Virus record (IMG/VR): IMGVR_UViG_3300029922_000001
Coordinates: 248,001-312,000 of that record
Strand: one strand, 5' to 3'
Length of the DNA stretch: 64,000 nucleotides
The notes beneath the pieces are model-generated. The model was given only the letters and a program-made list of their open reading frames with translations, had not been told where the DNA came from and did no database searches. Below are positions 941-44,595 of the stretch, one piece after another; position 1 is the stretch's first letter, and each line of letters starts with the position of its first letter. Both the position numbers and the translations under genes were made by a program.

Positions 941-1429
941 CTAAGTACTATCTTTAGTTGGATTAACACTAAATAATTCTTTTCTTATTTCCATCCACAA
1001 TTTTCCTAATTGATTTTGTCCATCTTTATTAGGTCCCCATCCCCAAAAATTATCACGCCAACTACACTCTACGATTGCATTATCACCACTAGCTTTAAGT
1101 TTTTTCATAACATACGGATGTTGATTTGCTTTTTCTTTTAAAATTTCTTTCATAATATCAAGTTTAACTTCATCCCAATCAACACGTCTTATATTTTTAT
1201 TTTCCTCAGCCCATTTGAAACAAGCATGTGCTGAAGGCATTTTTCTAATCATATTTTTGATTTTTGGATCGTCAAATTTCTCAGAATGATAAGCGTGTTC
1301 TGATGTTGGATAAATCTTACCCTTCCAATATAGTTGAAATGCAGAAAAATTAGAGAAAATATAATAATCACGTTCATAACAATCAAGGATTGGTAAGTCG
1401 TAATTCGCTAAATCGTGATATTCAATCAT
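941..1429 (-). CDS. NADAR (YbiA-like) family hydrolase
   Basis: FSNFSA...YPTSEHAYHSEKF...LKASGDNAIVECSWRDNFWGWGPNKDGQNQLGKLWMEIR; start moved to the ATG 6 nt after TATAAT. Confidence 0.9.
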   Translation of the reverse strand: MIEYHDLANYDLPILDCYERDYYIFSNFSAFQLYWKGKIYPTSEHAYHSEKFDDPKIKNMIRKMPSAHACFKWAEENKNIRRVDWDEVKLDIMKEILKEKANQHPYVMKKLKASGDNAIVECSWRDNFWGWGPNKDGQNQLGKLWMEIRKELFSVNPTKDST

Positions 1430-1436
1430 GCTATTA

Positions 1437-1697
1437 TTATAAGTAATCTTCATGATATTCTACTACTGGAGTGTTTGATTTAGCTTTAGACTCTTCTTCA
1501 GCTAACATGCCCTTTTGATAAGCCTCATTAAGCAATCTTAAATGTCTAGCTTCATGATCAGTAATCTCTCCATCCATTTGTGAAATTGAATTTATATCTT
1601 GTTCAACATACATCATCTTAGGAGATTCGTTAACGTCCTGAAATAATTTAAGATCGTGTGTTTTGGTTGTATTTTCGTTTATGATATTTGGTTTCAT
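1437..1697 (-). CDS. hypothetical protein
   Basis: ORF track; CATAAT-AAAGC-ATG leaderless start. Confidence 0.7.
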   Translation of the reverse strand: MKPNIINENTTKTHDLKLFQDVNESPKMMYVEQDINSISQMDGEITDHEARHLRLLNEAYQKGMLAEEESKAKSNTPVVEYHEDYL

Positions 1698-3424: not shown

Positions 3425-3434
3425 AAGTACTCGG

Positions 3435-3524
3435 AGGGGCATACTAGAATCAAACTAGTTCATAACGCATTTGCTAGATCATTAACCTAGCAGTGCGTCG
3501 CGATTCTCATTTCGCCAATGCCCC
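3435..3524 (-). tRNA. tRNA-Cys(GCA)-like gene with a 17-nt hairpin insertion in the anticodon loop
   Basis: GGGGCAT/ATGCCCC acceptor, U73, stem ACGCA/TGCGT around the 24-nt loop CTGCTAGGTTAATGATCTAGCAAA. Confidence 0.8.
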
Positions 3525-3534
3525 AAACTCTCGG

Positions 3535-3610
3535 AGCGCGGAGGGAGAATCGAACTCAACCGAATAATGGTTTTGCAGACCATTCCAATTAACCACTCTG
3601 GTACCCGCGC
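3535..3610 (-). tRNA. tRNA-Cys(GCA)
   Basis: GCGCGGG acceptor, ATGGT-CTGCAAA-ACCAT arm, TTCGATT loop; T-stem has mismatches. Confidence 0.85.
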
Positions 3611-4648: not shown

Positions 4649-4656
4649 TGTAACTA

Positions 4657-4803
4657 TTATACCTTACGACGAATTCGTATGAGAGTATTATCTACTTCTT
4701 TTCTTGTGATACCTAAAAAAGCAGCAATTGCACGATAAGATTTATTTAAACCATAAGCAATATAAACCTTGGTTTCATTTTGAGTTAATTCTAAATTATT
4801 CAT
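4657..4803 (-). CDS. 48-aa stand-alone sigma-70 region 4-like HTH protein (not in ORF track)
   Basis: MNNLELTQNETKVYIAYGLNKSYRAIAAFLGITRKEVDNTLIRIRRKV; TGCTATAAT-7nt-ATG; resembles the SigH C-terminus. Confidence 0.7.
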   Translation of the reverse strand: MNNLELTQNETKVYIAYGLNKSYRAIAAFLGITRKEVDNTLIRIRRKV

Positions 4804-4828
4804 AAGTGTATTATAGCATATTTTCTCG

Positions 4829-4917
4829 CGGGAGCTTAGAGATTCGAACTCTAAAGGCGCTTTTTACACGCCTAGCTGTTTTCAAGACAGTTTACCGTCA
4901 CCAATGGCAGAACTCCC
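4829..4917 (-). tRNA. tRNA-Ser(TGA)
   Basis: Cloverleaf with CT-TGA-AA loop, long V-arm, G73. Confidence 0.9.
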
Positions 4918-4926
4918 GTATTATTT

Positions 4927-5013
4927 CGCGGTAAGTAAAATATTCGAATTCGATTCAAAGAATATGAAGACAAACTTTGTTTAATTATTGATTCTATTTT
5001 AGGTAGACTTAAC
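4927..5013 (-). pseudogene. possible decayed tRNA
   Basis: tRNA-sized spacer with GTTAAGT/ACTTACC ends, TTCGAAT and a G-CGAAA trailer; internal arms do not fold. Confidence 0.35.
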
Positions 5014-5025
5014 AATTAAACATCT

Positions 5026-5113
5026 CGAAGACACCAGAATCGAACTGGACTCGCTTTTTACACGAGCGAACAACTTTCCAGGTTGCCGTCATCACCATCA
5101 GACATTATCTTCC
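5026..5113 (-). tRNA. tRNA-Ser(GGA), 3' acceptor end imperfect
   Basis: GCAAC-CTGGAAA-GTTGT arm, long V-arm; the 3' end runs directly into CGAGA. Confidence 0.75.
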
Positions 5114-5125
5114 ATATTATCTCGG

Positions 5126-5198
5126 AGCGCCAAATTGGAATCGAACCAATTTCCTATTGCTTACCAAGCAATCGTTCACCCACATGAACTTTAAGCGC
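5126..5198 (-). tRNA. tRNA-Thr(GGT)
   Basis: ATTGC-TTGGTAA-GCAAT arm; complete cloverleaf. Confidence 0.9.
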
Positions 5199-5208
5199 AT
5201 ATATCTCG

Positions 5209-5282
5209 TGGAGGCTCAATAGAGAATCAAACTCTACTCTGCGGTTTACAAAACCGCTGCATCGTCACAATGCTTTAAAGCC
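5209..5282 (-). tRNA. tRNA-Thr(TGT), CCA encoded
   Basis: GCGGT-TTTGTAA-ACCGC arm; complete cloverleaf. Confidence 0.9.
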
Positions 5283-5295
5283 ATATTATCTCGTA

Positions 5296-5394
5296 AGCCT
5301 AGTATCTGATTCGAACAGATGATGTTTGTATTCTTACTTGTTCTATTTTTTAACACAACAAGGTAAGTGCAATCGACCGCTATGCAAACTAGGC
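5296..5394 (-). tRNA. tRNA-Thr(TGT)-like gene with an 18-nt insertion in the anticodon loop
   Basis: GCCTAGT/ACTAGGC acceptor, U73, CTTAC/GTAAG stem around the 25-nt loop CTTGT[TGTGTTAAAAAATAGAAC]AA. Confidence 0.7.
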
Positions 5395-5405
5395 ATTTTA
5401 TCTCG

Positions 5406-5494
5406 TGGAGGAAGGCAGCGGGATCGAACCGCAGACGTATTTCAGTCCGTATAGTTTAGCAAACTATCCTAATCGCCGTTTTAGATTACCTTCC
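5406..5494 (-). tRNA. tRNA-Ser(GCT), CCA encoded
   Basis: ATAGT-TTGCTAA-ACTAT arm, long V-arm. Confidence 0.9.
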
Positions 5495-5502
5495 ATTATC
5501 TC

Positions 5503-5586
5503 GGCTAACGGGGAGATTCAAACTCCCGAAGGTTTTCACCGATGCATTACGAGTGCATTCCAATTGATCAACTATGGGACGTTAGC
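5503..5586 (-). tRNA. tRNA-Thr(CGT) with an atypical long variable arm
   Basis: GCTAACG/CGTTAGC acceptor, ATGCA-CTCGTAA-TGCAT arm, V-arm GGT-GAAA-ACC. Confidence 0.8.
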
Positions 5587-5910
5587 ATTTAACATTTCTA
5601 CATATCTAACTAAAACCTGACCGTGACACCTTTCTTGTTCGCCCCAACCAGTTTTAGGTCTACAAAAGCATACCAATTTTTTATTATGTAAGGATTTTAC
5701 CTTATCTTTGAATATTAAATCAGTTTCTAATCTATTTTTTAGATATTTTTCATATTCTGGTAAAGTAGAACTAGGAACTTGACCTGGAGATAATACTATT
5801 GGATTGCCAAAATATCCACTCTGTCCTTTCCCTGCTCTACCTATGTAGACATATTCAGAATCTTGTTCCCAACCCTTGTTGAGATGATATAAATTTACTA
5901 CTTCAGTCAT
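5572..5910 (-). CDS. DUF4326-type protein
   Basis: VYIGR...FGNP...LHNKKLVCFCRP...CHGQVL. Confidence 0.8.
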   Translation of the reverse strand: MTEVVNLYHLNKGWEQDSEYVYIGRAGKGQSGYFGNPIVLSPGQVPSSTLPEYEKYLKNRLETDLIFKDKVKSLHNKKLVCFCRPKTGWGEQERCHGQVLVRYVEMLNANVP

Positions 5911-6463
5911 TGACTTCCTCTATATATGCTGGTGGCACATATTCTGTTAACCATACACCATTTTCAGAACGATAAAAAACAAATCTATTCAAATCCATTT
6001 GCTTTGAATCCACCTTCAATAGTGCATACTTTCCTCTTCTAGAACCAACATTAATTGCTGTTTCTATGTTTTCAGAAAGATGAACCGCATGACGATACAT
6101 CTTCTTAATTCCTTCCTCTAAAATCATTGGTACAGCATCATATGTTGTACCATGATAAAGAATGGCAGGAGGATTCAATGGAACTAACTGAAGATCAACT
6201 TCACAAGAATGACCTTGATTGGCTCTAATTCTTGCTCCTGATTCATCATAAGAATATCTTTGCTTATTATTTTCCGTCACTAACTGATCTAAATCAGCCT
6301 TTGTGATGTTAATATTAAACTTTTTCAAACCGTCTAATAGTTGTGTTACGAATACATAACCTCCAAGATCAAGCTTTTCAACTCCAATCTTTTGTGGCTC
6401 ATGTCGCAATATTAACGAAATAAACTTTCCTATTCTTTTAAATTCACGTTCATCCTTAATCAT
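5903..6463 (-). CDS. kptA: RNA 2'-phosphotransferase (Tpt1/KptA)
   Basis: ISLILRHEP, NNKQRY, RIRANQGHS, LYHGT, RHAVHLS, SENGVWLTEYVPP. Confidence 0.95.
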   Translation of the reverse strand: MIKDEREFKRIGKFISLILRHEPQKIGVEKLDLGGYVFVTQLLDGLKKFNINITKADLDQLVTENNKQRYSYDESGARIRANQGHSCEVDLQLVPLNPPAILYHGTTYDAVPMILEEGIKKMYRHAVHLSENIETAINVGSRRGKYALLKVDSKQMDLNRFVFYRSENGVWLTEYVPPAYIEEVND

Positions 6464-6485
6464 GTTCTTTTCCCTAACAATGCCC

Positions 6486-7016
6486 TTACTTTTTAGGTAA
6501 GAGCATTACTGTCATTTGTTTCCCTTGTAAGAGAATTTCCCTATCTACAGTTACAATATCATTTAGTTTTTCCAAACAATATTCCAACTTTTGCTTTCCA
6601 ATATGAGGGTGAGCGAGTTCTTTTGTTTTGAACTTGCAAACCAACTGCACTTTGTCATGCTTCCCAATAAATTCAACCGCTTTACGAATTGACGTATCCA
6701 AGTCATGTACAGCCGTATTAGGGCTAATACAAAGTGTTTTAAGTTCTTGAGGCTTTTTACGGTTGTCTTTTGCACGTTTTGCCTCTTCATACTTATATTT
6801 GCCATAGCTTACGATTTTGCAGATAGGTGGTTGTACCTTATCAGATACGCACAACAAATCTAAACCAGCATCATATGCTATTTGGATTGCATCCTTCGTG
6901 GGCATTACACCAATATTTTTGTTATTAGCGTCAATGACCGTTACTTCGGTAAATTGCTTAATGAGTCTTTCATTAAGGGGTGGGAATTCTCTGCGATTAC
7001 TTTTTTTCATCATCAT
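6486..7016 (-). CDS. infC: translation initiation factor IF-3
   Basis: LNERL...AGLDLLCVS...PPICKIVSYGKYKYEE...HDL...DKVQL...GKQMTVMLLP. Confidence 0.93.
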   Translation of the reverse strand: MMMKKSNRREFPPLNERLIKQFTEVTVIDANNKNIGVMPTKDAIQIAYDAGLDLLCVSDKVQPPICKIVSYGKYKYEEAKRAKDNRKKPQELKTLCISPNTAVHDLDTSIRKAVEFIGKHDKVQLVCKFKTKELAHPHIGKQKLEYCLEKLNDIVTVDREILLQGKQMTVMLLPKK

Positions 7017-7105
7017 AATAGATTGACCTATTATACCAGGGTATTCTTCTTCATTACAATCTTTCTCTATTCAATTTTCAATGTGCTTGAGTTTTAATTC
7101 TCGGT

Positions 7106-7150
7106 AAATAAAAAACAGGAAGTCCGACTTAGGTCTGTCGGACTTCCTGT
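7106..7150 (-). terminator. intrinsic terminator of the Thr/Ser/Cys leader (attenuator 3:4)
   Basis: 14-bp perfect stem ACAGGAAGTCCGAC/GTCGGACTTCCTGT followed by TTTTTATTT. Confidence 0.9.
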
Positions 7151-7173
7151 TGAATCTTTCTATTTGGTTTTCT

Positions 7174-7263
7174 TTATGCTTGCCCGACAACAGCATTTCT
7201 ACAGCTTCCACAACTTGTGGAACTGGTAGTACTTGATGTTGATGTTGACGTGACTAATTTCAT
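7174..7263 (-). CDS. 29-aa Thr/Ser/Cys-rich leader peptide (putative attenuator; not in ORF track)
   Basis: MKLVTSTSTSSTTSSTSCGSCRNAVVGQA*; GGTATAAT promoter upstream; terminator 23 nt after the stop. Confidence 0.85.
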   Translation of the reverse strand: MKLVTSTSTSSTTSSTSCGSCRNAVVGQA

Positions 7264-7303
7264 TTTAACCTGCTACGTTTATTATACCCAATGTTTTGAT
7301 TGT

Positions 7304-7837
7304 TTACCATGTTTTTTTGCTTTTACCATCAAAACCTGTTTCTTTTAAGATTCTATCCCAAATTTCTTCTTTTGGAGTGTTCCCTAAATATGGATCTTTT
7401 GCCCAATTCAAGTTGGTAATTTCTAGTATAACAGGAAATGGTGGAGTATAGGCTTCAGCTTCTTCTAAAGAAGAAAATTCCATTTCCATACTAAGCAAAT
7501 AATGTCTATGGATCATATATTCATTAATTTCTTCACCGCTAGATAAAAAAGTTCTTCGTTTTTCAACTCTTTTCATTTTTGGTATTAAATTGTAATTATA
7601 AAACCAATTAAAAAGAAAAATTGGGATTTTAATATTGTATTCTTTTCTGACCAAAGGATCTGAGGTTTTTAATTTAAAAGTTAATTCGCATTTATTTGAA
7701 ACTGAATATGTTTTACGAATGCGACAACTTTTAAAAAATGGAAAATATCCTTGTGAAATGTATACGTTGTGTGTTTGAGTATCCCAAGGAATATCATTTT
7801 GATTTACTATAAACTTGCGTTCAATTTCATTAGCCAT
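7304..7837 (-). CDS. CYTH / triphosphate tunnel metalloenzyme
   Basis: EIERKFIV, ISQGY, RIRK, ELTFK, RKEYNIKI, EMEF. Confidence 0.85.
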   Translation of the reverse strand: MANEIERKFIVNQNDIPWDTQTHNVYISQGYFPFFKSCRIRKTYSVSNKCELTFKLKTSDPLVRKEYNIKIPIFLFNWFYNYNLIPKMKRVEKRRTFLSSGEEINEYMIHRHYLLSMEMEFSSLEEAEAYTPPFPVILEITNLNWAKDPYLGNTPKEEIWDRILKETGFDGKSKKTW

Positions 7838-7850: not shown

Positions 7851-8397
7851 TCATTTACCAGGACCCCACTCAAGACCAGGGAATTTATTTAAATTTTCCT
7901 CAATTTCTTTCCAGGGTGTGATTGATAGATATGGCTCTTTCGCCCAAGGCACATGTGTAATCTCTGTAACGTACTTGAAATCAGGAATATAAGCTTGTGC
8001 ATCTTCCAGAGAATCAAATTCCATTTCTACGATTACATAATACTGACCAGGATATTCATTAATTTGTTCTCCTGTTGGAATAATGTGTCGTGTTTTTTTA
8101 GTTTTAGTCATCCAAGGTGTAAGATACCAAAGCGGGAAAAAGACAAATTTAGGGATTTTAAAGTTATATTCCTTCCTGTCCTAAATTGGTCTGTTTATTC
8201 TTGTTTTTCTTGAATGTCAATTCGTATGTGCGGTCTTCATCTGAATATAATTCTTCATAGGTAATGATAGACTCACGAATTCTGAGATTTTTAATTAAAG
8301 GGAAATATCCTTGGGAAATGTCATGCCATTCTATAACATTTTCCCAAGGAATTTGGGTTGGTCGCACTATAAACTTGCGTTCAATTTCATTAGCCAT
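7851..8397 (-). pseudogene. second CYTH paralog, split by a +1 frameshift near 8180
   Basis: The N-half MANEIERKFIV (from 8397) and the C-half RKEYNFKIP...VEMEF are in different frames; 32 identical nt shared with the first copy's start. Confidence 0.75.
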
Positions 8398-8404
8398 ATG
8401 GCTA

Positions 8405-9382
8405 TTATACTTGAGCAAGTTCGGCTTGTAGCTCTTTAATGCGCTTTTGGAGTTCAAGTTTCTTTTTAAGTGTCGCTTCTTCTCTAAGCAAAGCTTGGAA
8501 TTCAGCATCAACTTCTTCCACTGCAACAGTCTCTAAAGCAACATGCTTCTTTATGGCTTTAGCTGCTTTAGGCATTTCTGTAGCCAAGATTGGTACATAT
8601 CCTCTTAGTATAAGAGTAAGACTTGTTGCATGATCTTCAATATCAATCCATTCTTTTTGACCAAAGGTTTGATTGGATCTGCTACCTTCAACAGTGCAAA
8701 CATCTTGTTCTCTTGATTCATTTAAAGATTTTGGCATAGCATTCGCAAATGAGTCTAAAGAATCCATTGACATGCTTGAAGCGGAATATGTTGGAGAACC
8801 AAAGCTTAATGAATTCAGTGAATTTACTGAATCTGAGCATAATCCTCTTACATTGCTTTTCATGGAAGATTGACCAATTAAAGCATTATTACTACCACAC
8901 CAGACTTCATCATGTCGTCTAGGGTAATGCTTGTAAGGGTATGAATAATCACGATACCAAGGATATGAATAATCATGATAATGATGATGATCTACTACGA
9001 TTGGAATGTAGACTGGTTGTGGTTTTTCTTTTTCTAACCAGAAGAAGGCTTCAACAACACCTTTGGAGCGGTCTTCATTAGAACCATTTTTTCCAAAATC
9101 AATAGCGTCATTACTGTCTAAAGCAGCTAATTTAAAGCATTTGTTGGTTTCATAGAAGCGTTCAAGATCAATTGCGCTGTTAGCGTTAATAATATATCCA
9201 TCACCGGATACATTTTCCCCGTCAATATGAATTTTGACCAAGGCTCTACGATTGTTTTTGTTTCTGAGGCGTAAACTATATTCTGATCCGAATGGAACTA
9301 GTACAGAATGATCGTTTCTCTCTGGGAGAAAGTCGTTTTGATTTTTGAGCTTGATAGCAAGCACGAAGTTTTTGTTATACAT
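8405..9382 (-). CDS. conserved hypothetical large-phage protein with C-terminal coiled coil
   Basis: MYNKNFVLAIK...PFGSEYSLRLRNKN...IHIDGENV; start corrected using the TATAAT box. Confidence 0.75.
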   Translation of the reverse strand: MYNKNFVLAIKLKNQNDFLPERNDHSVLVPFGSEYSLRLRNKNNRRALVKIHIDGENVSGDGYIINANSAIDLERFYETNKCFKLAALDSNDAIDFGKNGSNEDRSKGVVEAFFWLEKEKPQPVYIPIVVDHHHYHDYSYPWYRDYSYPYKHYPRRHDEVWCGSNNALIGQSSMKSNVRGLCSDSVNSLNSLSFGSPTYSASSMSMDSLDSFANAMPKSLNESREQDVCTVEGSRSNQTFGQKEWIDIEDHATSLTLILRGYVPILATEMPKAAKAIKKHVALETVAVEEVDAEFQALLREEATLKKKLELQKRIKELQAELAQV

Positions 9383-9592
9383 ATTTTTAACCATTATAAT
9401 CCTAACTCTTGTCCTCATGAGAGCGTGATTCGGCACCTTAATGGCGAGTGCCAAGGACAATTCTATTATACACCCGTTTTGAGGTTTTTTACCTTCGGAT
9501 TAAAAAACAGTCCAAACACAATAAAATTAATTATAATAAATTACCTTGTGAATAGGCTTGACAGTCTGAGGAATAGGAGGTATTATAACAAC

Positions 9593-10891
9593 ATGAGTAG
9601 CATTCTCGCTAGTAAGAAATACATTTATACGGATATCCAGGCGAATAACAATAAGTTCTGGAATATTGACCGCTATGACGATCATACAGTAATTACACGT
9701 TGGGGACGTGTTGGCGACAAAGAACAAAGCAAATCTTTCCCACATGGATCTGAAACTTCCGCAATTGCTTTTTTTAATCAAAAGTGTAGTGAAAAATCCA
9801 AGAAGGGTTATACCGAACAACGAACCATTGAATCCAATACTACCGTAAAGCAAACAACCGTTGCTTCATCCAATCTTGAAAGTATTGCTAAAAGACAGAT
9901 TCAAACTAATTCACCTGAACTAGATGCTTTGATTTCAAGGCTTACCAAAGCTAACATTCATAGCATTGTCGCAAACAGTAATATTAGCTATAACGATACA
10001 ACTGGTTTGTTTTCAACGCCATTAGGAATTATTGATGAAGATGCGATTTTGGAAGCTAGAGAACTTCTAGTGTCCATTAATTCTATTGTTCTCAATAGAG
10101 ACTTTGGAAATAAGGATTTTGCTGGAATCACCAATAAGTATTTTAGAATCGTTCCTACAGTTATCGGTAGATATCGTCAAGAACCTCAAGACCTATTCCC
10201 TAATAAGGAAACCGTTGTAAAGCAAAATGATCTTTTGGACTCACTTGAAGTCAGCTTGCAAACTGCTAAGGCAACCCCTGTAACTGCTACAACATCTGTT
10301 GAACCTGAAAAGAACATCTTTAATGTTAAGCTTCATGTGGTTGATGATCTTCCTGTTATTCAACGAATTACAGCCAAATATCAATCAACAATGAATCGTG
10401 GTCATCAGTGTTCCCATCTTGGTGTTAAGCGTGTTTATGAATTAGAAATTGGTGCTATGAAGACTGCTTTCGAAAATAAGGGTAAGCAAATTGGTGGTAT
10501 TCAAGAGTTGTGGCACGGTTCAAGAGTTGCCAATATTCTTTCTATTCTCTATAAGGGAATGATTATCCCACCTTCTAATTCTAGTTTTGTGGCTGGTCGT
10601 TTGTTTGGAGACGGTTTGTATTTTGCCAACCAAAGCACAAAGTCTCTTAATTATTCTTATGGATATTGGGATGCTAAAGGCAAGGACGAAAATTGCTTTA
10701 TGTTCCTTTGTGATGTAGCTATGGGCAAGCACTATACTCCTAAGTATTTACAATCCAATATTCCTGCTGGATATGATAGTTTCTGGGCTAAGGCTGGTAT
10801 TTCTGGCGTACAGAATGATGAAATCATCGTTCCACGTCTTTATCAAGCCAATCCTAGATATTTGATCGAATTCTCACCAGGTGGTAGATAA
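9593..10891 (+). CDS. WGR-domain PARP-like ADP-ribosyltransferase
   Basis: NNNKFW...RWGRVG (WGR); STPLG...TNKYFRIVP (regulatory domain); LWHGS, GDGLYFA and NDEIIV (H-Y-E triad); TTGACA-17-TATTAT promoter sets the start at 9593. Confidence 0.93.
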   Translation: MSSILASKKYIYTDIQANNNKFWNIDRYDDHTVITRWGRVGDKEQSKSFPHGSETSAIAFFNQKCSEKSKKGYTEQRTIESNTTVKQTTVASSNLESIAKRQIQTNSPELDALISRLTKANIHSIVANSNISYNDTTGLFSTPLGIIDEDAILEARELLVSINSIVLNRDFGNKDFAGITNKYFRIVPTVIGRYRQEPQDLFPNKETVVKQNDLLDSLEVSLQTAKATPVTATTSVEPEKNIFNVKLHVVDDLPVIQRITAKYQSTMNRGHQCSHLGVKRVYELEIGAMKTAFENKGKQIGGIQELWHGSRVANILSILYKGMIIPPSNSSFVAGRLFGDGLYFANQSTKSLNYSYGYWDAKGKDENCFMFLCDVAMGKHYTPKYLQSNIPAGYDSFWAKAGISGVQNDEIIVPRLYQANPRYLIEFSPGGR

Positions 10892-16781: not shown

Positions 16782-16841
16782 GCTTTATTATAAGGAAATA
16801 TTGATGGCTTTTACATGAATCAGTTATGGTATACTAACTCC

Positions 16842-18290
16842 ATGTTTGACACAGATCGTTTAATTCATTTAGAAAAGCTACAAGAAGCTGGTTTAAATCC
16901 ATTTGATAATTATGGATTTAAGATGACTTCACCAATTGGGTTATATCTTGATACTTTTAATGTATTGATTAATGCTGTTTGTTTTGATAATACACATAGT
17001 TTATGTGGTCGCATTATTTCTATGCGTATTATGGGTAATATGGCTTTTGTTGATATTTCCGATGGTTCTCACAAGGTCCAGGCTGTTTTCCGTAAGAACC
17101 TAATGGATGCTGACACTTATAAGGCATTAAGATACCTAGATGAAGGTGATCATATTGGCGTGACTGGCAATCCATTTCTTACCCAAGCTGGTGAGAAGTC
17201 AATTCTTGTTACAGAAATTAAGGTTCTAAGTAAGTGTCTTATCCCTTTACCAATTGGTAAGAGGAAGGATGGGGAAGTCTTTGATGCAGTTGTAGATCCA
17301 GATATTAGGCTTAGGCATCGTCATATTGACCTTGTAGCCAATCCAGATAATAGGGCGATGTTAATTGCACGTTCAAAGATGGTAAGCTGTATTAGGCGAT
17401 TTTTAGATCAAGAAGATTTTCTTGAAGTTGAAACACCTTTACTAACTGAGGTTGCTGGTGGAGCAAGTGCTAAGACATTTGATACTCATTATAATGCTTA
17501 TGATTTAGATATGCATCTTCGTATTTCTTTGGAAATTCCTTTGAAGAAGTTGATTTGTGGTGATATTCCTGCCGTTTATGAAATTGGTAAGGTTTTCCGC
17601 AATGAAGGTGCTGACGCAACTCATAATCCAGAATTTACACTTTTGGAATGGTATCGTGCGTATTCAACACCAGAAGAGGAAATGCAAAGGGTTCAAGATT
17701 TAGTTTCATATTTGATGCAAAAGTGGGATGCTGATCCTGCATGGGATGTAATTACTGTGCGTGATGCTATTTTAACCTATGTGCCTGATGTTTCCTGGTA
17801 TGATCTTGATGTTATTGAGAAAATGAGAGAACATGCTCGTAGAAATGGAATCCATGTAACAGATCAAGATACTATGGGGAAGATTGAAGAAAAGCTAGTC
17901 GCTAAGTTCGTTGAGCCTAATCTGTTATATCCCACATTCTTAACAGAACATCATATCAGTAATTCACCTTTAGCTAGAACAGCACCAGGGAAGCCTGATC
18001 GTGCTTATAGATTTGAAGCATATATTAATGGTTATGAAATCGCTAATGGTTATTCTGAGTTAAACAATGCAGTTGAACAAAAGGAACGATTAGAGGATCA
18101 AGTAGCTCAAAGAAATGGTGGAGACGCTGAAGCACAACCTTATGATCAAGATTTTATTTATGCTCTTGCCTCCGGTTGCCCTGCCGTAACGGGCGTGGGA
18201 ATCGGTCTAGATAGATTGGCAATGGTATTATATGGAGCAACACAAATTAGGCAAGTAATATTTTTCCCAACAATGAAGCATAGGAGTTAA
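16842..18290 (+). CDS. lysS: lysyl-tRNA synthetase (class II)
   Basis: OB-fold GRII..R..G..AFVD; EVETPLL; motif 2 FRNEGADATHNPEF; motif 3 GVGIGLDRL. Confidence 0.97.
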   Translation: MFDTDRLIHLEKLQEAGLNPFDNYGFKMTSPIGLYLDTFNVLINAVCFDNTHSLCGRIISMRIMGNMAFVDISDGSHKVQAVFRKNLMDADTYKALRYLDEGDHIGVTGNPFLTQAGEKSILVTEIKVLSKCLIPLPIGKRKDGEVFDAVVDPDIRLRHRHIDLVANPDNRAMLIARSKMVSCIRRFLDQEDFLEVETPLLTEVAGGASAKTFDTHYNAYDLDMHLRISLEIPLKKLICGDIPAVYEIGKVFRNEGADATHNPEFTLLEWYRAYSTPEEEMQRVQDLVSYLMQKWDADPAWDVITVRDAILTYVPDVSWYDLDVIEKMREHARRNGIHVTDQDTMGKIEEKLVAKFVEPNLLYPTFLTEHHISNSPLARTAPGKPDRAYRFEAYINGYEIANGYSELNNAVEQKERLEDQVAQRNGGDAEAQPYDQDFIYALASGCPAVTGVGIGLDRLAMVLYGATQIRQVIFFPTMKHRS

Positions 18291-22162: not shown

Positions 22163-22680
22163 AGTTTATTATACTTAATCAGATTCTCTTCTTGTGTGAT
22201 TTTATCCCAAGGTGCTTTAGATTGAAGAACTTTTTCAACAGTTGGATCATAATCCCAACGTTTAATCATATTTTGAATACTTTTAAGAGGTACACTATGT
22301 TGATTTCTTTTAGCTAATTCTTGTGCATCGAATTTCCAAGGTGTTTCAGGTTCATGAAAACTAACTTTATAATCATATTTTTGAGCAAGTTTTACGTACT
22401 CTCGAAATTCATAAAAAGAACAATTTGTATTGTCACAAATAATAGGAGTAATACCTTGTTGCATTGCCACTTCAGTTCTTCTTTCATTTTCTTTATGATT
22501 TTCAGTTAGTTTATTAACATCAAATTTATATTCACCATTAACCATAAATAGATCATCAGTAGAATGAATAACTCCACCTTTTCCTAATTGCTTAGAAAGA
22601 AAACTTTTGCCAGAACCGGGAAGTCCGCGAATTATTCTTAACTCTTTTTCTTGTTGTGCTTTTCTATACCAAGTAGACAT
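22159..22680 (-). CDS. AAA_33 / N4BP2-like polynucleotide kinase
   Basis: RGLPGSGKS, STDD, ICDNTN, LAKRNQHSVP. Confidence 0.88.
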   Translation of the reverse strand: MSTWYRKAQQEKELRIIRGLPGSGKSFLSKQLGKGGVIHSTDDLFMVNGEYKFDVNKLTENHKENERRTEVAMQQGITPIICDNTNCSFYEFREYVKLAQKYDYKVSFHEPETPWKFDAQELAKRNQHSVPLKSIQNMIKRWDYDPTVEKVLQSKAPWDKITQEENLIKYNKL

Positions 22681-22687
22681 AATTCGA

Positions 22688-23395
22688 TTATACCATTTTT
22701 CTATCAATAATTTCTCTAGTAATATATCCAGTAAACTTCTGCCAAGATTTCCGCGTCATTTGTTTTCTTACTCTTTTATATAAAGAATGTTTCTTAATTG
22801 CTTTAGTTATTGCTTTACCATTGAGCTTAATAGAGTCAACATCAATGCACGACATAAAGCTTTTTGCTAAAGCTTGAACTTCTAGGGGATTGTTAAAATA
22901 CGCATACTCTCCCATGTCATAGATGTTGATATATGTTTTGTCTTTACGTTTTTCTGTATACTCATTTTGAAAATTAGTAATATACAAATCATAATCAGCA
23001 TGAAAATCTGGCACACATCCTGCTTGTAAACAGTGAACCAACTCATGTCCCAATCTATCAACATAATCTGCGAGACAATGACATTCACATATATCAAGAT
23101 ATATGTAATAGTACATATATCTTTCACCAAAACCGCTGGAATCATCATCTAAAAGAAATATTCTAATAGGATATTTAAACATTTTTAGTGAGTTTAACCA
23201 ATTTTCTATTTCTAATAGTTTTCTTCTAAATTTATTACCATTAATGGAACTTTCTAATATACCAATACTTTCCTCAATACAAGGATGACGTTGTTTAACT
23301 GTTTTTGTTTTTATTTCACTTAATTTCCAATTAACTTCAATTAATCGTTTAGCTAATTCAACTTCAATTCCATGTGTATCGGGGATTTTAGGCAT
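22688..23395 (-). CDS. HExxH metallopeptidase-like protein
   Basis: GHELVHCLQ...YFNNPLEVQA; paralogous to 60393-61091. Confidence 0.6.
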   Translation of the reverse strand: MPKIPDTHGIEVELAKRLIEVNWKLSEIKTKTVKQRHPCIEESIGILESSINGNKFRRKLLEIENWLNSLKMFKYPIRIFLLDDDSSGFGERYMYYYIYLDICECHCLADYVDRLGHELVHCLQAGCVPDFHADYDLYITNFQNEYTEKRKDKTYINIYDMGEYAYFNNPLEVQALAKSFMSCIDVDSIKLNGKAITKAIKKHSLYKRVRKQMTRKSWQKFTGYITREIIDRKMV

Positions 23396-26892: not shown

Positions 26893-26973
26893 TACTAGGA
26901 AAGGGACTCGAACCCTCAAGGATCATTCGTTCTTAACGAAGTGGGTCTGCCATTTCCCATTATCCACCCTAGC
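26893..26973 (-). tRNA. tRNA-Leu(AAG)-like gene with a non-canonical core
   Basis: Extra GGATAA between acceptor and D-arm, complementary to ATCC in the short variable region; loop TT-AAG-AA; A73. Confidence 0.7.
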
Positions 26974-26986
26974 ATATTAATCTCGG

Positions 26987-27068
26987 TACTAGAGAAGGGA
27001 TTCGAACCCTCAAGGATTTTTGTTTCTAAAACAAAACGGTCTACCGATTCCACGTTATCCACCCTAGC
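26987..27068 (-). tRNA. tRNA-Leu(TAG)-like gene with the same non-canonical core
   Basis: GCTAGGGTGGATAA...ATCCTTGAGGGTTCGA shared with its neighbour; loop TT-TAG-AA; A73. Confidence 0.7.
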
Positions 27069-27078
27069 ATTTATCTCG

Positions 27079-27162
27079 TCCCGGCGAGTGGACTCGAACC
27101 ACCACGCCCTTTCAGGCAACAGATTTTGAGTCTGCCGCATCTACCAATTACACCACACCGGG
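27079..27162 (-). tRNA. tRNA-Leu(CAA)
   Basis: Canonical type II cloverleaf, CT-CAA-AA. Confidence 0.92.
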
Positions 27163-27181
27163 ATATTTCTCGTATAAGAAA

Positions 27182-27361
27182 TTAATTCTTATTTTGTGAA
27201 TCAAGTTGTCTTACTCTACTAAATAAAGCATCTCTCATTTCTTTGTTTTCACTTACTTCTTTAGCGTATGCACCCATCATATTTCTAAACATTTTTTGAC
27301 CTTCTTCAGTATTCATTGCTGATTCAATTATTTTCATTTTTTCAGGACTTGTTATAATCAT
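27182..27361 (-). CDS. 59-aa hypothetical protein inside the Leu array (not in ORF track)
   Basis: GGAG SD; MIITSPEKMKIIESAMNTEEGQKMFRN...DSQNKN*. Confidence 0.7.
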   Translation of the reverse strand: MIITSPEKMKIIESAMNTEEGQKMFRNMMGAYAKEVSENKEMRDALFSRVRQLDSQNKN

Positions 27362-27382
27362 ATTAATTCTCCAATATCTCGG

Positions 27383-27484
27383 TGAGCAAACAGGGACTTG
27401 AACCCTGATGACATTTTACTGTCGATGGGTTAGCAAAATTCTGATCTTGCTAAGCCCATTGCGTCTACATTTCGCCATTCGCCC
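27383..27484 (-). tRNA. tRNA-Leu(TAG)-like gene with an 18-nt hairpin insertion in the anticodon loop
   Basis: ATGGG/CCCAT stem around CTTAG[CAAGATCAGAATTTTGCT]AA; long V-arm; A73. Confidence 0.8.
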
Positions 27485-27493
27485 ATATTCTCG

Positions 27494-27579
27494 TGCGGAG
27501 TAAAAGATTTGAACTTTCACCTGTTGATAAGACAGAATGGGACCTTAGCCCATCGCGGCTACCATTACGCCAACCCCGC
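27494..27579 (-). tRNA. tRNA-Leu(AAG)
   Basis: ATGGG-CTAAGGT-CCCAT arm, long V-arm, A73. Confidence 0.85.
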
Positions 27580-27588
27580 ATATTCTCG

Positions 27589-27670
27589 TCCGGGCGAGAG
27601 GGTTTGAACCTCCATGTCTTGCGACGGCAGGTTTTAAACCTGCTGCGGCTACCAATTTCGCCACACCCGG
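27589..27670 (-). tRNA. tRNA-Leu(TAA)
   Basis: GCAGG-TTTAAAA-CCTGC arm, long V-arm. Confidence 0.92.
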
Positions 27671-27697: not shown

Positions 27698-27736
27698 AAA
27701 AAAAAGCCTGATTAGGATCAGATCCCAACCAGGCTT
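27698..27736 (-). terminator. intrinsic terminator of the Leu leader (attenuator 3:4)
   Basis: AAGCCTGGTTGGGAT/ATCCTAATCAGGCTT stem plus T-tract, 27 nt before tRNA-Leu(TAA). Confidence 0.9.
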
Positions 27737-27757: not shown

Positions 27758-27832
27758 TTATGCAGCTAGTTGGGTTCCTCCTAATAGTAGGAGGCTTGTT
27801 AAACCTTGTAGTTGCAAAGAATTCTTGTTCAC
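27758..27832 (-). CDS. 24-aa Leu-rich leader peptide (putative attenuator; not in ORF track)
   Basis: GTG start 6 nt after TGCTATAAT; MNKNSLQLQGLTSLLLLGGTQLAA*; 8 Leu codons. Confidence 0.88.
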   Translation of the reverse strand: MNKNSLQLQGLTSLLLLGGTQLAA

Positions 27833-27928
27833 GTATATATTATAGCATGATCCGAATGAAATTAACCATAATTTCTATAAATTATTTGAAAGAAGGAATT
27901 ATTCATATAGACATTGTAGATATTTAGT

Positions 27929-29275
27929 GTGAAACAAATTATTACAGCTAAATTAAAATTAGAAACAAATAAAGAACAATTTAAAGAATTAACTAATCTT
28001 AGTTTAGCTTATTGTGGCGCTTTGAATTTTGGCTCTAATAAAGCCTTTGAATTAGACAAAACTACTAATGCTAACTTATTGCACAAAAGTATATATCGAG
28101 AATGTCGTGATAAATTTGGATTACCATCACAATTAGCTTGTAGCGTTTCTAGATATGTTACTGCTTCTTATAAAACATTGTGGACAATTACCAATAAAAA
28201 TATTAAAGCAAGAAAAAACAAAGAAACTAAGAGAGTTTATAAAGGACTGAATAAAGCTCCAAAATATATATCAAGAACGACTATGTTTCAATATGGTAGA
28301 GATTTTACATTCAAGAAGGATCAACAAATTAGTATTATTACTCTTAATGGAAGAATTCTTCTAGATTATAAAGGATGGAATAAACATCTTAATTTAATTA
28401 AAGATGAAAATACCAAAATTGGTGGAGCTAAACTTTATTATGATAAAGCTAAGAAAACTTTCTATCTCTTAGTTAGTTTAGAAATAGAAACACAAGAAGA
28501 AAAACAAATTAACACAATAGGTATTGATTTGGGTCAAAGATATTTGGCTGTGGTAACTGATACACAAGATAATACATTGTTTATTCCTGGTAAGGAATGT
28601 ATTAATCAAGTTGGAAAATATCAACGAGTTCGTAGTAGTCTTCAAAAAAAGATTAAAACGAATAAGAAAAATGGTAAAGGCACTCGTTCTATAACTAGAA
28701 AATTAATCCAAGTTAAAGGACAAGAGAGACGGTATAGATTATCATTAAATCATCAAACAGCAAGTTCGATATTACAAAGATTTCCTAATTCAAATATAGG
28801 ATTAGAAAATCTTAAAGATATTAGAACAAGAACAGAAAGACATAGCAGTAAAAAAGATAGCAAAAAAAGAAAAGAAGCTAATCGTAATAAAGCTTCTTGG
28901 TCTTTTAATGAGTTACAACAATTAATAGAATATAAAGCTAATTTATATGGTAGTAAAATATTTAAAGTAGATGCCCATTATACATCTCAAATGTGTACTA
29001 AATGTGGTTATACTTCTAAAGAAAACAGACCTAAAAGTGGCTTGAATTTTATTTGTTGTAATTGTAATTTTAAATTACATGCTGATTTGATTGGAGCTAG
29101 AAATATAGCTATGAGAACATTGTTATCTAGACAAGATTTAGATAATAAGGGGCATTTATCAATTGTCCCAGTAAGCGGCAAAGCCGCTTTAGATACCTCG
29201 AACAGTGAAGTTAAAGCGGAATCCTTGAAAAAGTATTCTGAATTGAGATGGAGTTCGGAGGCAAACTTAACTTAA
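27929..29275 (+). CDS. tnpB: TnpB RNA-guided endonuclease (IS200/IS605 family)
   Basis: RuvC motifs GIDLG, GLENLK and HADLIGARNI; zinc finger YTSQMCTKCG...CCNC. Confidence 0.93.
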   Translation: MKQIITAKLKLETNKEQFKELTNLSLAYCGALNFGSNKAFELDKTTNANLLHKSIYRECRDKFGLPSQLACSVSRYVTASYKTLWTITNKNIKARKNKETKRVYKGLNKAPKYISRTTMFQYGRDFTFKKDQQISIITLNGRILLDYKGWNKHLNLIKDENTKIGGAKLYYDKAKKTFYLLVSLEIETQEEKQINTIGIDLGQRYLAVVTDTQDNTLFIPGKECINQVGKYQRVRSSLQKKIKTNKKNGKGTRSITRKLIQVKGQERRYRLSLNHQTASSILQRFPNSNIGLENLKDIRTRTERHSSKKDSKKRKEANRNKASWSFNELQQLIEYKANLYGSKIFKVDAHYTSQMCTKCGYTSKENRPKSGLNFICCNCNFKLHADLIGARNIAMRTLLSRQDLDNKGHLSIVPVSGKAALDTSNSEVKAESLKKYSELRWSSEANLT

Positions 29276-39843: not shown

Positions 39844-39882
39844 ATATAGCATTATCATACGTTTGCTTGGTATAATCAATGT

Positions 39883-40761
39883 ATGATGAAATCAAAATCT
39901 CAAGAGGTGTGGATGCTACGCGGCGTCCCCGGCAGTGGAAAAAGCACTTGGGCAAAGGAATTTATTAAAAATAATCCTGGTTATGTTCGCACTAATAACG
40001 ATGAAATTAGACTTGAAATGTTTAATCGCGTTTTTGATAAGAATGATACTAAGGCTGTTGATGCTGAGCGAAACAGAGTTATTAAGGAAACCCTTGATAA
40101 TGGTCTTAGTATTGTTATTGATAACACTAATTTGTCACCTAAGCGTGAAGACGAATACAAGACGTTGGCGAAGAAGTATGGTGCTGAATTTAAGATTCAG
40201 TGTTTTATGCATGTACCTTTACGTGATTGTTTGGCAAACAACTATAAGCGACCTAATCCGGTTGGTGAGAAGATTATCAAGGATATGTACAGACAGTTTG
40301 TAGAGCCTTTGTTGAAGCCAACTCCTGTTGAATATGTAGAGGGTTTAGAGGACGTGTACGTGTGCGATATGGATCAAACATTATCTTTAATGAAAGGAAT
40401 TCGTGGACCTTTCGAATGGCATAAGGTTAATTTAGATTTACCAAATATTCCGGTAGTTAAATTAATTCAAAAACTTGCTAAGACAAATAAAATCATTATT
40501 ATGTCTGGTAGGGATGGTTGTTGCCGTGATTTAACTATTGAATGGCTTAATCAACATGAAGTTCCGTTTTTTGAATTGCATATGAGGGCGATGAATGACT
40601 CTAGAAAGGATAGTACTGTGAAGGAAGAACTTTATAAATCAAAATTACAATATCGTTTTAATATTCTAGGTTGGTTCGACGACCGCGAAGCGGTTTGTGA
40701 ACTAGTTTATTCATTAGGATTACCACTGTTCCGTGTGGGGGACCCTCATAGTTCGTTTTGA
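39883..40761 (+). CDS. pseT: polynucleotide 5'-kinase / 3'-phosphatase (T4 PseT-like)
   Basis: GVPGSGKST kinase; HAD motif CDMDQTL; MSGRD; DSTVKEE; FDDREAV. Confidence 0.93.
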   Translation: MMKSKSQEVWMLRGVPGSGKSTWAKEFIKNNPGYVRTNNDEIRLEMFNRVFDKNDTKAVDAERNRVIKETLDNGLSIVIDNTNLSPKREDEYKTLAKKYGAEFKIQCFMHVPLRDCLANNYKRPNPVGEKIIKDMYRQFVEPLLKPTPVEYVEGLEDVYVCDMDQTLSLMKGIRGPFEWHKVNLDLPNIPVVKLIQKLAKTNKIIIMSGRDGCCRDLTIEWLNQHEVPFFELHMRAMNDSRKDSTVKEELYKSKLQYRFNILGWFDDREAVCELVYSLGLPLFRVGDPHSSF

Positions 40762-44588: not shown

Positions 44589-44595
44589 ACTTCAA

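Follow-up and report, generated by a model that had tools for sequence, protein, structure and literature searches.

A putative leader-peptide attenuator with serine, threonine and cysteine codons upstream of phage tRNA genes

The window analysed here is a stretch of 64,000 nucleotides from an uncultivated phage (IMG/VR record IMGVR_UViG_3300029922_000001, positions 248,001 to 312,000), and the features described below are on its minus strand. The locus begins with promoter P1, whose -10 element TGGGTATAAT (7281..7290), identified from sequence, includes the core motif GGTATAAT (7288..7281) and gives a predicted start at about 7274-7276. The motif GSTATAAT is over-represented, with 24 copies against 7.2 expected and 0 of 100 shuffles reaching that number, and one copy is located immediately 5' of the tmRNA gene. 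A P1-type motif also heads leader 3, another short ORF in the same genome (locus L168), and the orthologue of the present leader in the related phage L126. Downstream of P1, a short Shine-Dalgarno-like AGG (7269..7271) is found 5 nt 5' of the ATG of an ORF of 29 codons plus TAA (leader 1, 7263..7174). AAGG occupies this position in L126 and in leader 3, and the layout of a promoter closely followed by a short ORF that has plausible signals for initiation is also present in L126 and L168.

Ser, Thr and Cys make up 16 of the 28 codons considered in leader 1 (P of at least 16 of 28 = 2e-8 given the amino-acid usage of the phage). The six Thr codons are ACG, ACA (three), ACT and ACC, the eight Ser codons are TCA (three), AGT (three), TCC and AGC, and the two Cys codons are both TGT; the rare codons ACG, ACC and TCC are included and the common TCT is missing. 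All 16 are located in a putative regulatory run at codons 5-21 (7201..7251), and the 14-residue Ser/Thr/Cys run of leader 1 is the longest among 164,000 six-frame codons (82 kb of the 441-kb contig), the runner-up having 7 residues. Seven anticodons of the downstream phage tRNAs suffice for all 16 codons, and every one of these anticodons is represented. This statistical excess is shown, and the pattern of leader 1 exceeds chance arrangement.

An intrinsic terminator (segments 3 and 4, 7104..7151) starts 22 nt past the leader stop codon and consists of a 15-bp stem (7151..7114) and the U tract TTTTTTATTT. At -26.5 kcal/mol it is the strongest among 55 candidates in the window, and a compensatory C-G to A-U change was found in its stem in the near-identical strain L127. 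The last part of the ORF holds segment 2 (UGUUGUCGGGCA, codons 24-28, 7181..7192), which can pair alternatively with the terminator 5' arm to form the putative antiterminator, with its core TGTCGGGC (7189..7182) complementary to GTCCGACA (7143..7136) in that arm. The energy of this duplex (RNAduplex) is -11.7 kcal/mol, which 2.6% of shuffles equal or better (p = 0.026). In untranslated RNA, segment 2 is predicted to pair with segment 1 (GUC-CG-CAACA, 7243..7254); the MFE fold (z = -5.3) holds a 10-bp interrupted 1:2 helix, for which there are no covariation data, enclosing a perfect 7-bp hairpin within the ORF (TTCCACA/TGTGGAA, 7206..7222) that is unchanged in L126 apart from a loop base. When the nascent RNA was folded with a ribosome footprint, the antiterminator was present with the A site at codons 2-22 and absent at codons 23-29 or at the stop. 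In silico, leader 1 therefore satisfies the criterion that an antiterminator be free when the ribosome is stalled and masked when it is at the stop codon, and the logic predicted by the model is that of a classical attenuator. The shortness of the antiterminator, at -11.7 against -26.5 kcal/mol for the terminator, counts against the model.

The terminator is followed by a CCGAGA motif (7097..7102), conserved in L126, and the same motif flanks every tRNA of the phage; CGAGAWWW has 17 copies, 17 of 17 on the minus strand and 14 of 17 flanking tRNAs. Directly 5' of infC is promoter P2 (TTGTAA-18-TATAAT with TG, 7030..7059), which fits the promoter consensus at 10 of 12 positions with TG and has been kept in L126. 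Genes encoding infC (IF3_N and IF3_C domains, 7016..6486), kptA/Tpt1 (6463..5903) and a DUF4326 ORF (5910..5572), all identified by Pfam, sit between the attenuator and the tRNAs (5572..7016). The tRNA genes are Thr-CGT, Ser-GCT, a tRNA-like gene bearing an insert (5394..5296), Thr-TGT, Thr-GGT, Ser-GGA and Ser-TGA (4828..5586, ARAGORN and Rfam), followed by Cys-GCA (3610..3533, ARAGORN) and a second Cys-GCA with a 17-nt anticodon-loop insert (3524..3433, ARAGORN intron mode only). Several protein ORFs and two GSTATAAT motifs (4817..4810 and 4663..4656) lie between the Ser/Thr and the Cys tRNAs. The tRNAs are 1.5-3.7 kb from leader 1, and no minus-strand terminator other than that of leader 1 was found between 8200 and 5400. 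P2 and the two GSTATAAT motifs could drive downstream genes independently of leader 1, and since P2 is able to drive infC alone, the attenuator can add only a conditional component there. The presence of the parts and their order are shown. The window also encodes Pnkp, RNA ligase, Tpt1, two aaRS, tmRNA and IF3, indicating a heavy investment of this phage in supplying and repairing tRNAs.

A preliminary description made from sequence alone had named the promoter, the 29-aa ORF, its Thr/Ser/Cys counts, the ORF hairpin and the complementarity of segment 2, and all of these held, on the minus strand. Its 14-bp terminator held in part, the stem having 15 bp. The infC, kptA and one further ORF that it placed downstream were confirmed, the last being DUF4326, and so was the order of Thr and Ser tRNAs followed by two Cys tRNAs; the protein ORFs, the GSTATAAT motifs and the tRNA-like gene had gone unmentioned. 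Its caveat that a separate TTGTAA-18-TATAAT promoter (7059..7030) can drive infC was borne out. The suggestion that tRNAs once lay directly behind the terminator is a plausible conjecture, and modules 2 and 3 described below have that order; CGAGA also precedes tRNAs that follow protein ORFs, so the motif reads as a processing motif and not as a relic.

A second module was found in the same genome (27704..27846, minus strand), composed of a promoter motif GCTATAAT (27846..27839), a leaderless GTG ORF of 24 codons (27832..27758) and a 15-bp terminator (27736..27704). The arrangement is TATAAT-N6-GTG, and TATAAT-N5-9-start is the common gene layout in this phage. The ORF has eight Leu codons (TTG, CTA four times, TTA twice and CTC), with CTA at 4 of 8 Leu codons versus 13% genome-wide. 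The terminator 5' arm pairs best with codons 19-24 (-16.4 kcal/mol, shuffle p = 0.03), so the antiterminator criterion is supported for the Leu leader as well. Downstream is an all-Leu cluster of six tRNAs containing a 59-aa ORF (26893..27670; TAA, AAG, an insert-bearing class II tRNA, CAA, then TAG and AAG), in which the last two were read manually from their anticodon loops by eye and the others were called by ARAGORN/Rfam. The weaknesses of this leader are its GTG start without a Shine-Dalgarno sequence and a moderate Leu enrichment (P = 4e-4), and LLLL was seen 27 times in the six-frame set (164,000 codons). A 12-bp long-range partner is also present 5' of the Leu run, where a stalled ribosome would cover it.

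Leader 3 precedes a His/Tyr/Pro tRNA cluster and is located behind a perfect TTGACA-16-TATAAT promoter; its run YPYHPYPYHP is the longest Tyr/Pro/His run among the 164,000 six-frame codons. Its antiterminator was no better than shuffles (p = 0.3-0.6), and a cross-species tail swap between L168 and the relative L297 gave no specific covariation of this antiterminator, the swaps pairing about equally. The leader 3 peptide, used as query in a protein search, retrieved only itself, and its Asn-rich first half has no matching Asn tRNA in the relative L299. Crude ribosome-mask folds failed to separate the stalled from the released state for the Leu and Tyr/Pro/His leaders; the inferred direction of regulation rests mainly on leader 1. 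In 4 of 4 leaders of this clade the terminator arm pairs best within the last codons. In all canonical tRNA clusters recovered from the genome (3 of 3), the tRNAs come after a promoter, a short ORF rich in codons for the cognate amino acids and a strong terminator; in modules 2 and 3 the tRNAs are directly behind the terminator, unlike in leader 1. The recurring match between leader and tRNA isotypes is shown.

The conservation of the leaders is likewise shown. In L126, whose IF3 is 73% identical, the Ser/Thr/Cys core of leader 1 is kept with Ser/Thr tRNAs downstream. The core (codons 5-21) carries four synonymous changes and one Ser-to-Thr change, while the 11 flanking codons carry 10 changes, nine of them non-synonymous, and the intergenic region is 82% identical overall. 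In L297, whose PTH2 is 61% identical, and in L299, PYHPYPYH is kept with His/Pro/Tyr tRNAs downstream, indicating that in relatives the cognate core stays and the flanks drift. The leader 1 core also keeps its order of residues, which sensing of composition alone would not need. No leader was found before infC in the distant IF3-bearing phages L002-L004, indicating that phage infC does not generally come with such a leader.

Comparable leaders were observed in unrelated phages. L338 has 13 consecutive Leu/Ser/Phe/Tyr residues followed by Ser, Leu, Phe and Tyr tRNAs, L050 has two modules (F/E/H/D/A and P/Q/Y/T/G), and L111 and L045 have leaders for N/A/P/Y/D and L/S/Y/W, respectively. Among 240 clusters sampled without bias, at p < 1e-5, four cases were found upstream in sense against none in antisense and none downstream; in a first sample at p < 1e-6 there were four upstream in sense against 0, 0 and 1 in the controls. 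Of the phage tRNA clusters sampled, only some 2-6% carry the pattern. The terminator arm in other phages sometimes pairs best with sequence outside the ORF, and automated terminator and partner calls for 11 leaders were too sensitive to the choice of stem boundary for a universal segment 2 rule.

A promoter-module scan returned leaders 1 and 3 only, and the 38 other matches, without biased ORF or tRNA link, serve as an informal negative control. Of two tRNA-trailer scans of the sequence collection, the first was too unspecific and the second recovered at least L168 and L240. A metagenome scan with the leader 1 hairpin matched only its own contig, and megablast of the region, L050 and L111 against 50,697 phage records gave no useful cultured relative. 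Rfam Thr_leader, Leu_leader, His_leader and Trp_leader had no match at E <= 1 in the window, nor did the Rfam T-box riboswitch match there. The small ORFs in the tRNA region of phage T5 are not cognate leaders; a 91-aa T5 ORF with a W/E/Y/F-rich stretch before Tyr-Glu-Trp-Phe tRNAs was rejected because a promoter intervenes. An E. coli pheU leader, considered as a candidate, was absent on inspection of that region, a Cys/Tyr-rich ORF in L365 was rejected as a leader, and no leader was found at the TyrRS gene.

Leader 1 is considered, on computational evidence only, to be a probable ribosome-mediated transcription attenuator through which transcription of the tRNA operon follows the availability of cognate tRNAs, and one of a set placed before the isotype-sorted tRNA clusters of this phage. 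This supports the leader-peptide attenuator reading of the preliminary description, since the in-silico hallmarks are present, the 1:2 helix as a predicted fold only, and the isotype match recurs across modules as a rule and not by coincidence; the most telling evidence is from the other modules, the relatives and the unrelated phages, outside the locus first described; its proposed comparison of homologous leaders was also passed, matching tRNAs being linked in L126, L297 and L299. Host RNA polymerase would initiate at the GGTATAAT promoter with a ribosome following closely and translating the 29-codon leader, a translation that is itself inferred. With Ser-, Thr- and Cys-tRNAs plentiful, the ribosome would reach the stop and cover segment 2, the 15-bp terminator would form and transcription would end. 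If any tRNA reading the 16 Ser/Thr/Cys codons were scarce, the ribosome would stall within the run, leaving segment 2 free to pair with the terminator 5' arm, and with this antiterminator formed the polymerase would go on to transcribe infC-kptA-DUF4326 together with the tRNA genes for Thr, Ser and Cys. That stalling leads to readthrough and not the reverse, that the signal is the tRNA level and not the amino-acid level, and that readthrough reaches tRNAs 1.5-3.7 kb away are all inferred, and there are no experimental or transcript data. The net effect would be a demand-driven negative feedback on phage tRNA supply, which may be useful when infection depletes or cuts host tRNAs. Also counting against the model are the independent promoters and the distance to the tRNAs at leader 1, the non-significant antiterminator and unmatched Asn-rich half of leader 3, the partners outside the ORF in other phages, the conserved residue order of the leader 1 core, the low share of clusters with the pattern, and the absence of such leaders from T5 and the distant IF3-bearing phages. 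Moreover, extra tRNA would be no help if the amino acid were limiting instead of the tRNA.

The first alternative is that the leaders are true attenuators that report amino-acid starvation or translation capacity, or that work with reversed logic in which stalling favours termination. The ribosome-mask folds of the Leu and Tyr/Pro/His leaders, which do not separate the states, the 12-bp partner upstream of the Leu run and the non-significant antiterminator of leader 3 speak for it. Against this, leader 1 shows the classical pattern cleanly, reversed logic would give positive feedback on tRNA supply with no obvious use, and a general translation sensor needs no distinct set of cognate amino acids for each module. 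This alternative is regarded as unlikely. A second alternative, confined to leader 1 and also improbable, is that the attenuator governs infC-kptA at most, with the tRNAs transcribed from P2 or internal promoters and the Ser/Thr/Cys match a relic of an earlier layout with the tRNAs immediately behind the terminator. P2 is a good match kept in L126, CCGAGA is right behind the terminator, and the other two modules have their tRNAs directly after the terminator. However, the Ser/Thr/Cys core is under purifying selection in L126, where the infC cassette is also present, and the stretch from leader to tRNAs is without a terminator.

It is very unlikely that the short ORFs are ordinary small phage genes, each with a terminator of its own, for functional peptides, for example the precursor of a Ser/Thr/Cys-rich modified peptide. 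Ser/Thr/Cys-rich cores are typical of modified peptides, and the conserved residue order of the leader 1 core in L126 would fit. However, no modification enzymes are encoded nearby, where IF3, Tpt1, DUF4326 and PARP-like genes were identified, the core begins at residue 5, leaving no recognition leader, and the match of each peptide to its own tRNA set, in five or more unrelated phages, would remain unexplained. Equally remote is the possibility that the promoter-terminator unit is a small non-coding RNA with an incidental ORF, for which the strong structure (z = -5.3) and the 82% identical intergenic region could be cited, because the substitutions are codon-aware (four synonymous and one within-class in the core versus nine non-synonymous in 11 flanking codons), the amino-acid runs are extreme six-frame outliers and no Rfam family matches.

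The proposed attenuator shares with thrL and leuL of E. coli a promoter, an ORF with regulatory codons, four pairing segments, predicted by folding in the phage RNA, mutually exclusive antiterminator and terminator, and a stop codon that masks segment 2. thrL, like the phage leaders, mixes amino acids (two), and leuL relies on rare CUA codons, comparable to the CTA-rich phage Leu leader. In contrast to thrL and leuL, the phage-encoded elements regulate tRNA genes together with infC and kptA instead of biosynthesis genes and combine up to five amino acids mirroring the tRNA set, and there is no sequence or structure homology. The pheST leader (pheM) of E. coli is a leader-peptide attenuator of a component of the translation apparatus; it differs in being cellular and in regulating an aminoacyl-tRNA synthetase in response to a single amino acid. 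The T-box is similar in its isotype-specific tRNA readout choosing between terminator and antiterminator upstream of translation-related genes, but it binds uncharged tRNA via a specifier codon without translation, whereas the phage element has a translatable ORF. In mycobacteria, leaderless polycysteine short ORFs are Cys-responsive attenuators of cysteine-metabolism genes (bioRxiv 10.1101/834739). These are likewise short, leaderless (as is the Leu leader), built on runs of one codon type and based on stalling, and they differ in targeting cysteine metabolism and not phage tRNA genes. To our knowledge, no described leader-peptide attenuator regulates anything beyond amino-acid biosynthesis or aaRS genes, and no description of cognate leader-peptide attenuation of tRNA genes was found in the literature searched. 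The attenuation mechanism itself is known; new here would be the targets, tRNA genes together with infC and kptA.

Why phages carry tRNAs and how these are controlled is an open question, and phage tRNAs are currently explained as compensating for codon usage, as substitutes for host tRNAs that are degraded, or as a means of evading defences that cleave tRNAs. The attenuator model explains the sorting of tRNAs into isotype-themed clusters in these genomes, the leader signature helps to annotate regulatory small ORFs overlooked by gene callers, and the model is testable with short synthetic constructs in E. coli or a cell-free system. A possible use is as compact programmable sensors of individual tRNA pools in synthetic biology. 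In a bolder reading, towards which the evidence leans only slightly, several unrelated phage lineages carry undescribed composite leader-peptide attenuators mirroring the isotype sets of their clusters, and a tRNA cluster would be transcribed only when ribosomes report those tRNAs short, as may happen once host tRNAs have decayed or been attacked by anticodon nucleases. If this holds, the leaders would be built-in, isotype-resolved sensors of the tRNA pool, with a composition that predicts the co-regulated tRNAs. If the attenuator model is true, classical attenuation would extend from biosynthesis and synthetase genes to tRNA genes themselves, and some phages would regulate their tRNA supply by demand, isotype group by isotype group, with the ribosome as sensor.

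For the leader 1 locus, all the features listed in the preliminary description, which had proposed a Thr/Ser/Cys leader-peptide attenuator at 7098-7290, were found where it had placed them on the minus strand. The window covers bases 248,001-312,000 of the phage contig IMGVR_UViG_3300029922_000001, which is 441,498 bp long with about 33% G+C, and no cultured relative was found. The sequence contains a promoter with TGGGTATAAT (7290..7281), an AGG 5 nt upstream of the ATG, a leader ORF of 29 codons with 6 Thr, 8 Ser and 2 Cys (7263..7174), a perfect 7-bp hairpin inside this ORF (7206-7222), a terminator with a 15-bp stem and a U tract (7151..7114), a CCGAGA motif (7102..7097) and a second promoter, P2 (7059..7030). 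Downstream on the same strand, infC, kptA/Tpt1 and a DUF4326 gene are followed by tRNAs Thr-CGT, Ser-GCT, Thr-TGT, Thr-GGT, Ser-GGA, Ser-TGA and Cys-GCA; another Cys-GCA, whose anticodon loop holds a 17-nt insert, was detected only in intron mode. The tRNAs lie 1.5-3.7 kb from the leader and no further terminator was found in between; P2 and two internal promoter motifs are able to feed the genes downstream of the leader. Upstream of leader 1 are three paralogous ORFs (7304-7837, 7851-8111 and 8164-8526, minus strand) without a Pfam match at E <= 0.01, two of which start with an EIERKF-type motif known from CYTH-domain proteins.

The 14-residue S/T/C run was the longest among 164,052 six-frame codons (82 kb of the contig), the runner-up having 7 residues, and with the phage's own amino-acid usage as background the probability of at least 16 S/T/C in 28 residues was 2e-8. 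The terminator ranked strongest among 55 hairpin-plus-U candidates in the window. GSTATAAT was present in 24 copies against 7.2 expected, one of them immediately upstream of the tmRNA gene, indicating that it acts as the -10 element of the phage. The seven phage anticodons suffice to read all 16 S/T/C codons of leader 1. Rare codons occur among these, namely ACC, TCC and ACG, the last making up 6% of Thr codons genome-wide, while TCT, common at 28% of Ser codons, is absent. The anatomy and its statistics are shown, by computational evidence only.

The leader 1 RNA folded far more stably than its shuffles (z = -5.3), and in the minimum-energy fold codons 4-8 (segment 1) were paired with codons 24-28 (segment 2) in a helix surrounding the internal hairpin, with the terminator separate. 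The RNA was then folded after being cut just before the terminator 3' arm, with the ribosome footprint masked. With the A site anywhere in codons 2-22, a range that takes in all S/T/C codons, the terminator 5' arm paired with segment 2, and with the A site at codons 23-29 or the stop this pairing was absent; the model thus predicts the decision of a classical attenuator. The antiterminator helix of leader 1 is modest (-11.7 kcal/mol, equalled by 2.6% of dinucleotide shuffles). That of the Tyr/Pro/His leader (leader 3) did not outperform shuffles, nor did a swap test of the L168 and L297 loci show specific covariation for it. For other phages, the best pairing of the terminator arm sometimes involves sequence outside the ORF. 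The gap from stop codon to terminator was 21-31 nt, counting only leaders measured by hand or resolved cleanly.

Two further modules were found in the same genome. Upstream of the Leu tRNA cluster of the window is GCTATAAT, and a GTG ORF begins 6 nt later, with 8 Leu among 24 codons (TTG, CTA x4, TTA x2 and CTC), followed by a 15-bp terminator, the third strongest in the window. The anticodons of the cluster are TAA, AAG and CAA, plus TAG and AAG again, the last two read by eye. This leader has no Shine-Dalgarno sequence. Many long genes carry TATAAT, in the (G)GTATAAT form, only 5-9 nt upstream of ATG, e.g., at 39869-39885(+), 22680-22694(-) and 44588-44602(-), indicating that leaderless mRNAs are widespread in the phage, and the missing Shine-Dalgarno sequence would be consistent with this. 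Two TnpB/Cas12f-like ORFs (OrfB_IS605 and TNB domain) were also observed at 27929-29275(+) and 35196-36305(-), one of them abutting the Leu leader promoter, together with a weak HEARO RNA match at 35181-35287.

The third module, L168 (5-12 kb of the contig), was recovered by a trailer-motif scan. It has a perfect TTGACA-16-TATAAT promoter, a 41-codon ORF with YPYHPYPYHP, a Y/P/H run unmatched in length across the six-frame set (next 7), a 16-bp terminator, and then His-GTG, Tyr-GTA, Pro-AGG, Tyr-GTA, Pro-TGG and more His-, Pro- and Tyr-like genes. The three clusters have no called isotype in common, and each leader is richest in the residues of its own cluster, with S/T/C, Leu and H/Y/P counts of 16/1/0 in leader 1, 4/8/0 in the Leu leader and 6/1/10 in leader 3. 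The exception is a fourth locus (L240, 388-399 kb of the contig), where no leader peptide was found and a promoter is immediately followed by CGAGA and by long, unusual RNAs that resemble tRNAs and bear large inserts (L240 1-1700).

In relatives, the full leader 1 arrangement was kept on L126, an 11-kb contig with 73% identical IF3, ahead of Ser-GCT, Thr-CGT and Thr-TGT. Its S/T/C core differs by four synonymous changes and one Ser-to-Thr, and in the 11 flanking codons 9 of 10 changes are non-synonymous. A 99% identical strain (L127) carries a compensatory C-G to A-U pair in the terminator. Leader 3 was also present in L299 (a 295-kb contig) and L297 (adjacent PTH2 gene 61% identical), with PYHPYPYH kept, the N-terminal halves diverged, His, Pro and Tyr tRNAs again downstream and, in L297, a wholly different terminator sequence. 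Conservation is shown in this way, and unlinking of homologous leaders from matching tRNAs, which the preliminary description had named as a refutation, was not borne out in L126, L297 or L299. In the first half of leader 3, Asn also recurs at intervals of two or three residues (6-7 Asn; L168 1869-1940, L299 6055-6110), a feature lost in L297; no Asn tRNA was evident in the clusters behind it, including that of L299.

The motif CGAGA(W3) occurred 17 times in the window, all on the minus strand, and 14 of the 17 copies flank tRNAs (e.g., 5496-5503, 27581-27588 and 7096-7103), either trailing them on the 3' side or, after a protein ORF, leading them on the 5' side, which points to a probable processing site. 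It is absent from L297, where tRNAs end in CCA. Since this trailer is restricted to the phage clade of the window, L168, L126 and L299, the other phage loci brought in by unspecific scans form a first sample that is effectively random with respect to leaders.

Several loci of this sample have the same kind of module. An N/A/P/Y/D-rich ORF and terminator precede Pro, Asn, Asn, Asp, Ala, Tyr, Pro and Tyr tRNAs (L111), and an L/S/W/Y-rich ORF precedes Leu, Ser, Leu, Tyr, Trp and Ser tRNAs (L045, 59% G+C). L050 has two paralogous modules with a common promoter and MRT start. In one, FDFAFFAAEADE leads into tRNAs for Phe, Glu, His, Asp and Ala; in the other, a T/G/Y/Q/P/K-rich stretch is followed by tRNAs for Pro, Pro, Gln, Tyr, Thr, Gly and Gly. 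L062 is similar to this second module. A cleaner sample of 118 loci, selected solely by two adjacent canonical T-loops, gave 240 clusters, with p < 1e-5 in 4 upstream-sense, 0 antisense and 0 downstream cases. The clearest match (L338) is a 19-codon ORF containing an uninterrupted run of 13 L/S/F/Y residues; a terminator (-28 kcal/mol) and then Ser x3, Leu x4, Phe x2 and Tyr tRNAs come after it. L360, on a 618-kb contig, is a plausible T/V/D case with an unclear U tract. Recurrence is shown, at a prevalence of only a few percent in the samples, and no such leaders were found in phage T5 and distant IF3-bearing phages. In T5, a W/E/Y/F-rich stretch of T5.072 (91 aa; L256 11618-11893(-)) closely precedes the Tyr-Glu-Trp-Phe tRNA cluster, with an annotated promoter between the two; it may be a coincidence or a degenerate relative of the leader design.

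The thr, leu and pheST leaders share the working principle of the phage element but not homology, and no Rfam leader or T-box family matched at E <= 1. For attenuation by leaderless short ORFs, the nearest parallel is the polycysteine ORFs of mycobacteria (bioRxiv 10.1101/834739). Leader peptides or attenuators before tRNA genes or phage tRNA arrays were not described in the literature searched in full text; prior mention is possible, as much of the subscription literature lay outside the search. E. coli pheU was considered as a precedent and rejected, its sequence showing no leader upstream.

The observation in the preliminary description is confirmed, and its attenuator interpretation is supported and generalised: leader-peptide attenuators probably precede these phage tRNA clusters, although all evidence is computational. 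The mechanism proposed is ribosome-mediated attenuation with classical logic. When the cognate run is decoded fast, the ribosome would occupy segment 2 and the stop codon and the terminator would form; when any tRNA of the set is scarce, slow decoding would leave segment 2 unoccupied. Segment 2 would then sequester the terminator arm, and the tRNA operon would be transcribed. Three points are inferred: that the ORF is translated, which way the switch operates, and that it senses tRNA and not amino acid.

In addition, hairpin inserts of 17-18 nt were found in the anticodon loop of several tRNA genes (loci concerned: window 3433-3524, 5296-5394 and 27381-27484, minus strand; L168 2672-2790(+); L299 7016-7100(+)). 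The L299 orthologue without insert is Tyr-GTA, indicating that the L168 insert lies within the anticodon (GT|A). Genes for translation and RNA repair are also densely represented in the window, encoding two aaRS, one of class II (Asp/Lys/Asn type) and one of Tyr/Trp type, tmRNA, Pnkp and an HNH-domain RNA ligase, as well as the ADP-ribose-acting NADAR and PARP+WGR proteins (16815-18290(+), 62703-63899(+), 45574-45927(+), 39883-40761(+), 58286-59314(+), 941-1453(-) and 9308-10891(+)). The inserts, with Tpt1/KptA, RNA ligase and Pnkp in the same window, hint at phage-run tRNA splicing or repair. The attenuators would provide negative feedback for each isotype group, and Pnkp, RNA ligase, Tpt1, two aminoacyl-tRNA synthetases, tmRNA, IF3 and the neighbouring PTH2 fit a phage that needs to defend its tRNA pool.
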